Shown: positions 44,101 through 50,100, counted from the first letter of the stretch. The stretch: 64,000 nt of DNA from Octopus bimaculoides (GCF_001194135.2 NC_068998.1:49880615-49944614), one strand, 5' to 3'. Made by a program: numbers and translations. Notes: generated by a model not told the origin, from the letters alone.

Positions 44101-47100
44101 ACATATTCATTATTCGTTCAAATATTACAAAAACGGCAATTTATACACAGGAATGATTCCACAAAATTTTACTATATATGACTGTTTCAGTTATGTAGCA
44201 TTTCTTCATAGATACACAATTTTGTAAGGACGTTGGTGACTAATATTAAGCTGTAAAATCTGCAGGTGTTGCAGCTGATGAAAGGTGCATGGAACTGGGA
44301 CAGAAGTACTGCGATAAAGCTATGTTGACGTATCCATTGGCGACACCTGATATGAACTACTGCAAGTACATACCCTATGTTTTATTATTTTTTTGTTGAA
44401 TATGAATCCTATCTACGTTGACTCTGCATTCATCATTTCGGGATTGATGAAGTAATATTCCAGTTGAGCACAAAGGTTGTTTTAATCAACTAACCACTCT
44501 TTTCAAAATACTGGCCCTGCAATAAAAAGTAGAATTCTTAATATAATCTTTTCTACTCGAGGTACGAGGCCCGAAATTTGGTGGGGGGAGGGCAGTCAAT
44601 TAGTTCGACCCCAGTAGGCAACTGGTATTTAATTTATCAACCCCCAGAAAGGATGAAAGGCAAAGTCAACCTCGGCGAAATTTGAACTCAGAATGTAACG
44701 TCAGACGAAATACAGCTAAGCATTTCGTTCGGCGTGTTAACTCTTCTGTTAGCTGGCCGCCACGTACAAGTTAATATAAAGTGATGGAAAAAAGAAATAT
44801 GTGCAAGGAAATACCTAAAAAAAAAAAAATAATAACTTACGAGAAAAAAAAAAGGACTGATTATCTCTGTGTGAATATATTTAAGCTGCATTAATTCCTG
44901 ATCTTAAAATGTTCGTCGACACTTCTTGATAGTGGATGTTAACACAAAAATATATGTGTATAAACATACTGGTGATCCAGTCCAGCATAACGGACTCACT
45001 TTTTTATTTCCTTTTGCTGCATCGTATATTTAGTTCTAGAATTTCAAACTATGTACCACCTAATGTTACTTTTTAATATCCAATATTCTAATATAGATTA
45101 ATATAACGAAACCCATGCCTAGCGATTTTTTGAAAATGTGTTTAAACTGAGTTCTTTAAAAGAAGCAATTTATTTTTTCAATTCATGATTTACCTACGTT
45201 GGTTGTAATATCTGAAATTGAATATATATGAATACATATGTACACACACATACACATCACATACGCACACCTCTACGCACACGCAACACATACACGCACG
45301 CATAACCCCACACACGAACACACACACATACACACACACACAAACACACACACATATATATATATATATATATATATACATACATATGTATATACATATT
45401 CATAACTATATATGTCTATATATGTAAGTATATACATATGTGTGTGTATATATAAGTATGGATGTACATACATACATACATACACACACACACATATATA
45501 TATATATATATATATATATATATATATATATGTATATGTTTATATATATATAGATAGATAGATACTTACATACATACATACATACATACATACATATATA
45601 TGCATGTGTGTATTCGTGCGCGCGAGAAAATCCCCTAAATACAGCAGACGAATTTCACATGTGCACTATTTCATGTCATCCTATATATATGATATTATAA
45701 CACAAGCTGTCATGATAACTTTTAAAAATATCCGCGATTATGTTTTTGGATTTCAGCCGTTTGGAATTATTTCTGTCATGCTTTACACCGATCGATTCAT
45801 GCCATAAGCGGTTAAAAAGAATTTCCGACGTAGATTGCAAACGTAAGCAATTTCTAATATTCATAATATTCTTGAAACAGAAATTTGTAACACTTATGAG
45901 AAAGATTACGTTCTTACGTCCTATTTCGACTATAAAATTGTCTTAAAAATCATTTACTATTATGTTCACGAGTGTTAAGACGAGATTTTAGGAAAATGTG
46001 CCCTTGATCAATGCAAGTAATCCATCAATCCATCCATCCATCAATCCAGCCATCCATCATCCATCCATCATCAATCCATCAATCCATCATCTACCCATCA
46101 TCAATCCATCATCCATACATCATCCATCATTCATCATCCATCATCCATCATCAATCATCAACCATCATCAATCGTTAATCATCAACCATCAATCATCAAT
46201 CATCATCAATCATCAGCAATCGTTAATCACCAATCATCATCAATCATCAATCAGCATCAATTTTCATCATTCATCAACCATCATTCATCATTAATCATCA
46301 ATCGCCAATCATCAATCATCATCAATCATCAATCATCAATCATCAATCNNNNNNNNNNTCAATCATCATCAATCATCAGCAATCGTTAATCACCAATCAT
46401 CATCAATCATCAATCAGCATCAATTTTCATCATTCATCAACCATCATTCATCATTAATCATCAATCGCCAATCATCACCAATCATCAATCATCAATCATC
46501 ATCAATCATCAATCATCATCAATCACCATCAATCATCAATCATCATCAATCATCAATCATCATCAATCATCAATCATCATCAATCATCAATCATAATCAA
46601 TCATCAATCATCATCAATCATCATCAATCATCATCAATCATCATCAATCATCAATCATTAATCATCATCAATCATAAATCATAAATCATCGTCAATCATA
46701 ATCATCGTTCATCATCAATCATCAATCATCAATCATCATCAATCATCAATCATACCGAGCGCAGCTCTGCGCCTTGGGTATGTGCTGTGTGTGGTTTGCT
46801 GTGGTGCTCTTATGGTTACTGTATTGAAAGTGTTTTGCGTAGGATGTGTGCAGTGCCCAGTAATGCAATTTTCTGTATGTTTCTGGTGTTTTAGTTATGA
46901 ATTGTTTCTGTTTTTAGATTCCACATTCGAGTTACCTCTATTTCCAGGTATTTGTATTATTATTATTATTATTATTATTATTATTATTATTATGATTATT
47001 ATTATTATTATTATTATTATTATTATTATTATTATTATTATTATTATTATTATTATTATTATTTCGTAAAACTGTGTAGGTAAAAATTCACCCGAGTCTT

Positions 47101-50100
47101 TACTCATCTGTCAAGTCACACAAGGTTCATAGACAGATAATACTCTCCTTAAGATGTGCACTGTGTTCAATAAGGCTGCTTTTTGCAAGACATTAATATT
47201 GCATGAGATTTCCGATGCCTTAAGTAGTCTTGAAGTTTCAAAGGGATTGGGCCCAATGCTTCGATCACCACTGGTATCACTGGTATAACTGGTATCACAT
47301 TCCTAACAGTATTGCCATTTCCACTTGCAATTCCGAGTATTTGGTGATTTTTTCAACCTCTTTACTCACAACACGCATGTCATTTGGTATGGCCACATCA
47401 ATGATTTGATTGTAATTGTCTTTCATTTTCAATATGACAATATCCGCCCCATTTTCGATTACACGATCCGTCTGAAAATCGTATTCCCTGAGTATCGTTA
47501 CTTTACCATTATCCTGCATGACTTTCTGGACACACTCATTCAGTTGGGCTGCTAGTCTTTCATGATCTTCTGTTTTAACTACTCTCTTCTCTTACAACAT
47601 CAAACCCGCTCTTCCGCATTCATGTCTTCCCTAATTCTTCTCTTTCAGTATTTCTCCATTTTTTGTTTCCCTTGAACCATAGTCAAAATTTTCCTGTATC
47701 TTGCTTTGCCCACATTATGTCCCTTTCAAGGTCTCGTTTCCACCCAGAAAGTTGTAGATATTAAGGTTTTAGGATTTAATAAAGATGGTCTTTTGTATGT
47801 CTGTACAGAAAATCTGTAGTGTTGTTAGAATCAAAAGGATGTTTACATTGTTGAATGTTGACAAAAAAATGTAAAATTTGTATGCGTTGCAGTTCAAAAG
47901 GAATGCATCAATTTGGCCAACAAGCACTGCACGGCAGTCATGAAGAAAATGCCTATAAGTAAACCAGATGTGAACTTCTGCAAGTACATACCCTTGTTTT
48001 ATTAATTTTATTCATGAATTTCAATCCCGTCTAAGTTGACTTCACCACTTCGGGGTCGATAAAATGACGTAACACTTGAGGACTGAAGTCGATTTAATTG
48101 ACTAACATCTCTGATAAATATCCGGGCAGTGTACCAGAAACTAGAATTATTATTACATTTAATAAATACGGTTAGAAAGAACCCATTGATCGGACTGGAA
48201 CGTTAAGCACGCCGGGAAAAAATATTTAGAGGTACTTCTTCCCATTTTACGTTCTGACTTCAAATTCCGCCGTAGTCGACATTGCCTGTCATCCTTTCGT
48301 GGTCGATAAGAAAACGTACCAGTTGAGTGCTGGTGTTGATATAATCCACTTCCCCGAAATTGCTGACCTTGTGCTTAAATTTGAAATCAATATGTAAGGC
48401 AGGGAAGCTGCCAGAATCGCCAGCTCCACGGCATTTATTCAAAATTTATGTTACGAAATAAAGTTCCACCGACGTTTATTCGCCTCTCATGCTTCCCGAG
48501 TCTGAGAAATAAAGAGCAATTCAGCACTTGCGTTGATACAAGTGAGTTACGCCATTCCCGAAATGGTAGTAATTGTGCCGATATATTTGAAAAGATAAGG
48601 CACTAAGCTGGCCGAGTCAGTCGCTTGGGACAACTGCATCGCAATATTTCCTCCAGCATCTTAGGTCCTATTGTCCTCCCGAAGCTGAATACGTTTTAAT
48701 CGTTCCTAGGTGGATAAAATGAAATAACAGTCAGCAAACTGAAATCGAATGAATGGGTTGCGTTTTCGAATATGCTTGAATTAAAACCATCATTATTCTG
48801 AATATTTAAATGCATAACTTATGTCTATGGATCTTGCTAATATTGTATGCATTGCCAGAGGTTTAAAAATAGTCAGATGATATGCATTAAATACGTTGTG
48901 ATATCAATACATTAACAGTAAATATAATATTGACTTAACAATGGTGATCTATCATGGCGAATGATAGATATATATGTGTGTGTCTCTGTGTGTCTGAGAG
49001 TGTGTATGTGAGTGCGTGTGTGTGTGTGTGTGTGTGAAAGTGTGTGTGTGTGAAAGTGTGTGTGTGTGAAAGTGTGTGTGCGTGTGAGTGTGTGTGTATA
49101 CTACAATCTCCTAAGTATGGGAGACAGATCTGACATTTAATATATGTTGATACAATAAAAATGATAGACATACAGCCAGGGTGTGTGTGAAAGTGTGTGT
49201 GTGAAAGTGTGTGTGCGTGTGAGTGTGTGTGTATACTACAATCTCCTAAGTATGGGAGACAGATCTGACATTTAATATATGTTGATACAATAAAAATGAT
49301 AGACATACAGCCGGGCGTCTTTCGAAGTTATTTGCACTATTTTATGTCAGTTTATACATATGATTTTATAAAGTTAGGACTCAGTATAACTTTCCAGAAT
49401 ATTTGAGATTAATTTTTTGTATTTCAGGCGTATGATACTTTTTCAGACATGCTACTCTCCGACAGATCCTTGTACTGACCTGTTTCGAAGAGTTCTTGAT
49501 CGTCAATGCTTACGTAAGCTAATTCAGATATTTATAATATTTATGAAACAGAAATTTACAAGACAGAAACTTTACATTCGTCAGTCATATTTTGACCTTA
49601 AATTTGAAAAAAAGGACCTTATTGATTTTGTACAAACACGAGATTCAAAACGAGATTTTAAGGTGATGTCACCTTGATGAGTGCTTTATTATTATTATTA
49701 TTATTATTATTATTATTATTATTATTATTATTATTATTATTATTATTATTATTATTATTATTAATATTATTATTATTATTATTATTATTATTATTATTAT
49801 TATTATTATCATTATTATTATTATTATTATTATTATTATTATTATTATTATTATTATTATTATTATTATTATTATTATTTAAGCTATTTTTTTCAGTGCA
49901 CCAAACTAACAGAACCTTTTGAACGTCTTGCGAAATGCTTCGTAGAATTTCGTTCGTTTTTACGTTCTGAATTAAAATTCAACCCAGGGCGAATTTGCTT
50001 TTCATACTCTCAGACCGATAAAATAAGTAATAACTGAGAAAAGGAAGAAGAAGAATAGGAAAGATTATAATGAATGGCATCCTAAAAATACATCTTACGG

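Follow-up and report, generated by a model that had tools for sequence, protein, structure and literature searches.

Two A-B modules in one unit: a probable two-module gene and its shifted internal acceptor in an array of six-cysteine genes of Octopus bimaculoides

The G6 unit and its exons

The DNA analysed here, referred to as the window, is a stretch of 64,000 nucleotides of Octopus bimaculoides (GCF_001194135.2 NC_068998.1:49880615-49944614) is AT-rich and full of microsatellites, and carries a tandem array of genes for small secreted proteins of one six-cysteine family. The general plan of the family proteins is a signal exon of 13 residues, at least one module of about 60 residues, with six cysteines and a predicted four-helix fold, encoded by two exons (A and B), and a hydrophobic tail exon resembling a signal for attachment to glycosylphosphatidylinositol (GPI), and since every intron in this plan is in phase 1, modules can be added without breaking the frame. 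This work concerns the unit G6, in which two A-B modules are placed between one signal exon and one tail exon. Its parts are the following.

41112-41148, plus strand: signal exon S6 (nhmmer E 1e-34), with a GT donor in phase 1, ending on the first base of the next codon; the closest first exon to G6.
44266-44365, plus strand: exon A1, first half of module 1 (E 3e-23), with the canonical acceptor ctgcag/GT.
45757-45842, plus strand: exon B1, second half of module 1 (E 1e-16).
46918-46947, plus strand: mini-exon of 30 nt, phase 1-1, 10 residues, present in the deposited protein A0A0L8GPX5.
47884-47892, plus strand: former first 9 nt of A2 (GCGTTGCAG), now the end of the intron; the preceding canonical AG is mutated to AT (47882-47883).
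47893-47983, plus strand: exon A2 as the deposited protein uses it, first half of module 2, with the acceptor shifted by 9 nt (+9).
49428-49513, plus strand: exon B2, second half of module 2 (E 8e-18).
50406-50491, plus strand: tail exon T6 (E 7e-150 including flanks), coding for small residues followed by a hydrophobic C-terminus.

Counted from the original acceptor, the two A exons are each 100 nt long (44266-44365 and 47884-47983) and the two B exons each 86 nt (45757-45842 and 49428-49513), giving an A-B pair of 186 nt, or of 177 nt with the +9 acceptor, which is entered and left in phase 1. The pair has the same phase on both flanks and a length which is a multiple of three, as a duplicable phase 1-1 module should. 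The coordinates and phases given in a preliminary description made from the sequence alone were all correct on re-checking. Similarity between the copies extends beyond the exons, with an identity of 67% for the A blocks (44252-44543 versus 47870-48155, E 1e-34) and of 69% for the B blocks (45659-46014 versus 49330-49684, E 1e-46).

It had also been proposed that no signal or tail exon lies between the modules, which makes G6 a two-module unit with one signal and one tail exon. Nucleotide profile hidden Markov models of the signal regions of 12 units and of the tail regions of 10 units, taken from O. bimaculoides and O. vulgaris, gave no match in 45843-47883 (best E 4.7 and 2.9), and in the equivalent interval between units G3 and G4 the same profiles recovered the tail exon T3 (E 2e-87) and the signal exon S4 (E 1e-84). 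Both proposals were thus borne out, and G6 consists of two intact phase 1-1 modules in tandem with no first or terminal exon in between, which would presumably be transcribed together.

One further feature of the inter-module interval bears on its continuity.

46015-46750, no strand assigned: intronic (CATCAAT)n microsatellite, unique in the window, which holds a 10-N gap.

The gap (46349-46358) is flanked by sequences of which the last 153 nt on the left match the first 156 nt on the right, end to start, at 96%, whereas off-register matches within the repeat reach about 81%. The repeat has no other occurrence in the window and is not found at other gap edges. The contigs on either side thus overlap, which physically links module 1 to module 2; the gap is without effect on the continuity or the reading frame of G6. 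The link from S6 to A1 spans a gap of 607 N (43030-43636) and comes from scaffolding only. The corresponding locus of the chromosome record CM046618.1 (assembly GCA_001194135.2) equals the window base for base, with the same contigs and gaps, and is not an independent sequence.

The deposited protein model and the mini-exon

The spliced product of G6 matches one database protein, UniProt A0A0L8GPX5 (171 amino acids, O. bimaculoides, named 'GDNF/GAS1 domain-containing protein'). This model of 2015 is a two-domain protein with the order A1-B1-mini-exon-A2(+9)-B2-tail, so that the two-module gene was already modelled, and the kind of event is known. Its first exon is S5 and not the nearer, near-identical S6; T5 and S6 are skipped. 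The two exons from outside G6 are given below.

34041-34077, plus strand: signal exon S5 (MKATISMCLLIL), first exon of A0A0L8GPX5, part of the relic unit G5, with an orthologue in O. vulgaris (80% identity over 632 nt).
37015-37100, plus strand: tail exon T5 of the relic unit G5 (DVPKSRLAPCVVTLNNILLAVPESTIF*), skipped by the deposited G6 model.

The mini-exon had been overlooked in the preliminary description. It ranks first among 72 in-frame open cassettes in the interval between the modules, by a family-trained splice-site matrix that is skewed by the conservation of paralogous flanks and was applied solely for this ranking. Its use in G6 is presumed from the deposited model, where its 10 residues form, in the structure model, a disordered linker. 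The inter-module linker, for which a trimming had been proposed, may thus be longer, not shorter.

Conservation and predicted product

In an alignment of 30 modules the six invariant cysteines are all present in both modules of G6, as are Pro, Asp and Arg at near-invariant positions, and both fit the pattern C-x7-C-x16-C-x6-7-C-x6-7-C-x12-C with conserved Y-P, P-D and R-L, no invariant column being lost. Module 2 retains an open frame, both donors and the B2 acceptor. The probability of neutral retention of six Cys codons at the observed divergence is about 2e-4 to 2e-3. The module exons, at 57% identity, are more diverged than the flanking introns at 67-69%, with a ratio of nonsynonymous to synonymous substitution rates (dN/dS) of about 0.66 at saturated dS. 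This suggests a fast-evolving surface on a fixed cysteine scaffold, with rapid or diversifying evolution of the module surface.

The AlphaFold model of a single module has four helices and a predicted local distance difference test score (pLDDT) of 95. In the model of both modules the score is 85-95 within each module and below 50 in the mini-exon linker, with a predicted template modelling score (pTM) of 0.50. The protein is thus predicted to carry two helical modules that fold separately, are linked flexibly and are held at the cell surface. The T6 tail has by eye the form of a GPI signal, with small residues for attachment, a short polar spacer and a hydrophobic end; GPI anchoring of the G6 product is putative, as is any binding function.

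Read-through past the donors of B1 and B2 (45843-45895 and 49514-49566) would give similar in-frame hydrophobic peptides, and the first 50 or so intronic nucleotides are more conserved than the remaining flank.

The acceptor of the second module

At the acceptor position of A2 (47879-47883) the sequence reads TGTAT, whereas the paralogues carry a sequence ending in TAG or CAG, and an in-frame AG is found at 47891-47892, 9 nt into the exon. The preliminary description had read both correctly, and the AG which it predicted to be used is the very site used in the deposited A0A0L8GPX5. In the assembly collection no record was found for two plain genomic open reading frames (ORFs) overlapping the A2 acceptor.

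The acceptor regions of 23 A exons were aligned, 13 from first or single modules and 10 from hard-wired internal modules. The canonical AG is kept in all 13 of the former and lost in five out of ten of the latter (Fisher's exact p 0.0075, or 0.033 without near-duplicate units). The exons having lost it are those of G6 module 2 (AT) and of modules 4 (AT), 6 (AT), 7 (AC) and 9 (TA) of the O. bimaculoides gene LOC128248155. In each of the five an AG is retained exactly 9 nt further on, and this is the site used in the annotated proteins. As most single-module A exons, A1 included, carry the +9 AG too, it is an ancestral latent site and not a fortuitous rescue. The mechanism proposed at first was right in substance, and it recurs in four modules of LOC128248155.

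The three residues removed by the shift had been assigned to the signal peptide. In first modules x-V-A would indeed end the signal peptide, judging from the -3/-1 rule, but other internal modules retain these residues as linker, so that their trimming is optional.

A wider idea can be put forward only tentatively, namely that the A exon may hold a built-in latent acceptor (ending in GCAG) exactly 9 nt inside. Each time a module turned internal, its canonical AG could then be lost and splicing would move to the latent site, taking out the three leftover signal-peptide residues, so that conversion from first to internal exon would be recurrent and pre-adapted. As every exon of the array is in phase 1, the signal exons S1 and S5 of degraded units may act as alternative first exons for downstream genes, and the array would then be a combinatorial splicing cassette.

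Hard-wired unit or other arrangement

That both modules are present in one protein is suggested by their conservation, by the 2015 model and by precedents in the family. At the P0008 locus of O. vulgaris, whose protein is annotated identically in O. sinensis, the order is signal-A-B-A-B, with 970 nt between the modules and no signal or tail exon there, and in LOC128248155 one signal exon is followed by about nine A/B pairs. G6 belongs with these hard-wired multi-module genes and not with stitched models. We estimate the probability that G6 is a genuine hard-wired two-module unit at roughly 0.6.

A number of observations weigh against this reading. The start of A0A0L8GPX5 at S5, 10 kb upstream and past T5 and S6, is odd, and the exact deposited protein is encoded on no contig in the assembly collection. 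The NCBI annotation of the same assembly has no protein-coding gene across G6, and no annotated G6 orthologue is present in O. vulgaris or O. sinensis. The pyrimidine tract at the +9 acceptor of A2 is mediocre. Gene models of this family can also be stitched over complete units, as in P0002 and LOC128249887, which makes a multi-module model alone weak evidence. P0002 of O. vulgaris (CAI9735841.1, four modules) is a model over 69 kb, put together from six full single-module units every one of which has a signal and a tail exon of its own.

Some of these points would fit a gene in which module 2 is not part of the protein, B1 (45842) being spliced directly to T6 (50406), or a G6 locus that is silent or decaying, where the loss of the AG marks the onset of exon death. 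The direct join from B1 to T6 is in frame, the canonical AG of A2 is mutated to AT, the absence of a coding gene from the NCBI annotation and of annotated orthologues from other octopus species would be expected, and degraded units do occur in the array (G1 without B and tail, G5 without A and B, and an orphan tail at 32361-32702). A dying exon would hardly, on the other hand, have kept its open frame, six cysteines, Pro, Asp and Arg, donors and B2 acceptor at a divergence well above the orthologue level. The predicted fold of module 2 is as confident as that of module 1, four internal modules of the annotated nine-module gene have likewise lost the AG and are spliced at +9, and module 2 is included in the 2015 model. 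We therefore regard this explanation as unlikely.

Very improbable is a separate gene made of A2, B2 and T6 with a new first exon of its own, starting at in-frame ATGs around 46812 and 46863 and coding up to the donor at 46947 for a hydrophobic product as a possible signal peptide. The mini-exon shares its frame with a hydrophobic ORF (46782-47069), and the 46947 donor is the best in the interval; this hydrophobicity, however, follows from the G/T-rich composition, the sequence is unlike the conserved MK-type signal exons of all other units, and the deposited model splices B1 to the mini-exon through the acceptor at 46917/46918. An assembly artefact, in which the contig with A1 and B1 (43637-46348) really comes from a module-less neighbour such as G5, is hardly credible, since, although this contig is gapped at both ends, G5 consists of a signal and a tail exon without module and the version 2 chromosome record shares the contigs and gaps of the window and is thus not independent, the right end of the contig overlaps the left end of the one with A2 (153 nt, 96% identity) within a repeat unique in the window, there is no room between S5 and T5 (34405-36350 is continuous and the flanks of the 10-N gap at 36620 overlap too), and modules of 57% identity are no haplotype duplicates.

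Age and origin of the second module

Returning to G6 as a two-module unit, its second module had been described as a domain multiplication caught in the act, which the divergence of the copies contradicts. The modules share 34% identity in protein and 57% in exon nucleotides, and their flanking introns 67-69%. The flanks of S5 and S6 (66%) and of T5 and T6 (66%) are at the same level as those of the G6 modules, the range across paralogous flanks being 65-69%. The S5 region is 80% identical to its O. vulgaris orthologue over 632 nt, and the same O. vulgaris segment is only 64% identical to S6. With paralogous flanks at 65-69% versus about 80% for orthologous ones, all these paralogous splits, that of modules 1 and 2 among them, are older than the separation of O. 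bimaculoides from O. vulgaris. The doubling in G6 is thus ancient, was already present in a model of 2015 and has precedents in the family, being a textbook exon-module duplication. The comparison with O. vulgaris is bounded by the segment analysed (OX597831.1:17169723-17259231), which stops, on the side of the MKVAISMCLLILC exon, at the signal exon orthologous to S5, just short of the G6 region, and no annotated orthologue of G6 or G7 was found to extend it.

At the DNA level A1/B1 and A2/B2 are each other's best match within the window, followed by G7 (E 4e-8). In the protein tree, whose sequences are too short and diverged to tell internal duplication from a fusion of neighbouring units, bootstrap support is 25% for modules 1 and 2 as sisters and 38.5% for a grouping of module 1 with G7. 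The homology of A2 to A1 and to G7 ends 14-21 nt upstream of the exon, and A1 and G7 share 88 nt there. The region around the mini-exon acceptor (46867-46925) aligns to intron sequence located 48-101 nt ahead of A1 (z 4.6; none of 500 shuffles scored as high), which points to the upstream intron of A2 being displaced rather than lost. It suggests that the original intron survives, moved by about 940 nt through an insertion made up of an ATT microsatellite and 800 nt of unique sequence.

47066-47862, no strand assigned: unmatched segment of about 800 nt just upstream of A2, probably an insertion, with no match in the window or the O. vulgaris locus.

A transposon was considered for this segment and not retained, its minus-strand ORF having no Pfam match and the segment being unique in the window and the O. 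vulgaris locus. The ORF (47295-47519, minus strand, 74 residues) has by eye the look of a retroelement tail, without Pfam match or second copy.

The inter-module intron is a hybrid, in which the start of an intron from B to tail is joined to the end of an intron from signal to A. A tandem duplication of A-B and a deletion fusing two neighbouring units both yield such a hybrid, and the origin is either of the two. In the sequence of events which we propose, an old event would have added module 2, either through a segment of about 2 kb with A and B being duplicated in tandem or by fusion of neighbouring units through loss of a tail and a signal exon. Once the module was internal, its canonical acceptor AG would have decayed to AT and splicing would have moved to the latent AG 9 nt downstream, dropping the three residues of the signal-peptide end. 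The insertion just upstream of A2 may then have supplied the additional linker exon of 30 nt.

Many introns of the array hold a short interspersed repeat, about 150-200 nt long (44517-44741, 48186-48393, 36434-36599, 26988-27146, 15398-15522 and 31931-32148). It is oppositely oriented in the A1-B1 and A2-B2 introns, and these are therefore independent insertions made after the modules had separated.

The array and its degraded units

A scan of the whole window with the profiles gave the following exons (start positions unless a range is shown).

2857, 11099, 14781, 24138, 34041, 41112, plus strand: signal exons.
4213, 12194, 16087, 25249, 44266, 47884, 57554, plus strand: A exons.
13258, 17120, 26446, 45757, 49428, 59445, plus strand: B exons.
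About 14100, 18230, 27455, 32361-32702, 37015, 50406, plus strand: tails.

In the O. vulgaris locus, which is free of gaps, regular single-module units of signal, A, B and tail are repeated six times. From this array, and from the intact S1-S6 and T2-T6 of the window, the ancestral unit is taken to have one module. An exhaustive HMMER search gave 17 relatives, of which 16 have a named source, in every case an Octopus species; the family appears fast-evolving and, within the searches made, restricted to octopus.

Several units of the window are degraded. G5 (34041-37100) is a module-less relic, in which S5 and T5 are intact, with long flanks homologous to S6 and T6, and no A or B is found in the continuous sequence between them; its structure is thus the reciprocal of that of the adjacent G6 with its two modules. 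G1 (2857-6900) has a signal exon and an A exon (4213-4305) and neither B nor tail. An orphan tail region (32361-32702) has no signal, A or B upstream, where a gap of 857 N is located at 28104-28960. Deletions are evidently frequent in the array, given these degraded units. Between the B and tail exons of G2 an inverted A-type exon is found (13578-13684, minus strand, nhmmer E 3e-6).

In the RefSeq gene LOC128249887 (window 2857-27540, six isoforms) modules from three structurally complete units are combined. Left out of it are an intact tail (about 14100), a second signal exon identical to the first (14781), T3 (about 18230) and S4 (24138), and its isoform X2 starts at S1 (2857) and passes over the A exon of G1 itself. 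Either splicing does read through from one unit to the next, or the model is stitched.

The G6 locus is a clean example of phase 1-1 module multiplication inside a tandem array, in a family that has single-module, degraded, two-module and approximately nine-module genes. The one departure from the textbook is that internal modules have repeatedly turned to the latent +9 acceptor, a modestly novel detail which suggests a simple rule for tidying a domain next to the signal peptide once it becomes internal. The fast evolution, the kept cysteine scaffold and the probable surface display make this a candidate cephalopod family for recognition or signalling.

Comparison with known systems

No paper on the octopus six-cysteine family was found in the literature. 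The 'GDNF/GAS1' label of A0A0L8GPX5 was followed up and is unsupported by Pfam or fold search: PF02351 (GDNF receptor/GAS1) gave no match at E ≤ 10 for the G6 protein (P0001), its separate modules or nine relatives, and Foldseek against PDB, with the one-module as with the two-module model, returned unrelated proteins, the best E being about 6. P0001 has no Pfam match at all, and no hit passed the database-wide threshold when the module profile was used in a word-indexed search. The only Pfam signal to recur was a partial match to the RGM N-terminal domain (PF06535), above threshold for P0002 alone, which reached 37.9 bits (cut-off 24.2) only by summing four partial matches, at profile positions 20-49 of 70, and against PDB sequences the module profile found only RGMB, at E 0.02 over 26 residues. 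The family is thus an uncharacterised octopus family, for which a distant link to RGM N-terminal domains is possible, the similarity being marginal.

RGM N-terminal domains (PF06535; RGMB structures 4UHZ and 4BQ6) share with the octopus modules the pattern D-x-x-[FY]-C-[KR]-x-L-x-x-Y-x-x-C-x6-7-C over about 26 residues, and both are helical and disulfide-bonded. RGMs are GPI-anchored proteins, as the octopus proteins may be. The differences are that only about 40% of the profile is matched and that no RGM structure was returned by Foldseek. The G6 product of 171 residues is moreover too short, having only a signal peptide, two modules, linker and tail, without the von Willebrand D-like region or the autocatalytic cleavage site.

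GFRα/GAS1 proteins are all-helical, cysteine-rich, GPI-anchored extracellular proteins with tandem domains, a description that the octopus family would share by prediction and on which the UniProt name is based. They differ in that none of their structures was found by sequence profile or fold, and a GFRα domain is larger than the octopus module, which has its 6 cysteines within some 60 residues.

LOC115219848 of O. sinensis and O. vulgaris, with two modules, and LOC128248155 of O. bimaculoides, with about nine, are other multi-module genes of octopus; they have the same A+B module and one signal exon, with no signal or tail exon inside. Unlike G6, they are found at other loci and belong to other subfamilies, and their annotated proteins are without the T-type hydrophobic tail.

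With classical phase 1-1 exon shuffling the family shares the phase-1 introns on both sides, the disulfide-rich extracellular unit and its tandem multiplication (two and about nine copies in paralogues). The octopus module differs from the classical ones in being spread over two exons (phases 1-2 and 2-1) and not one, and in that its internal copies repeatedly move to a latent acceptor 9 nt inside the exon.

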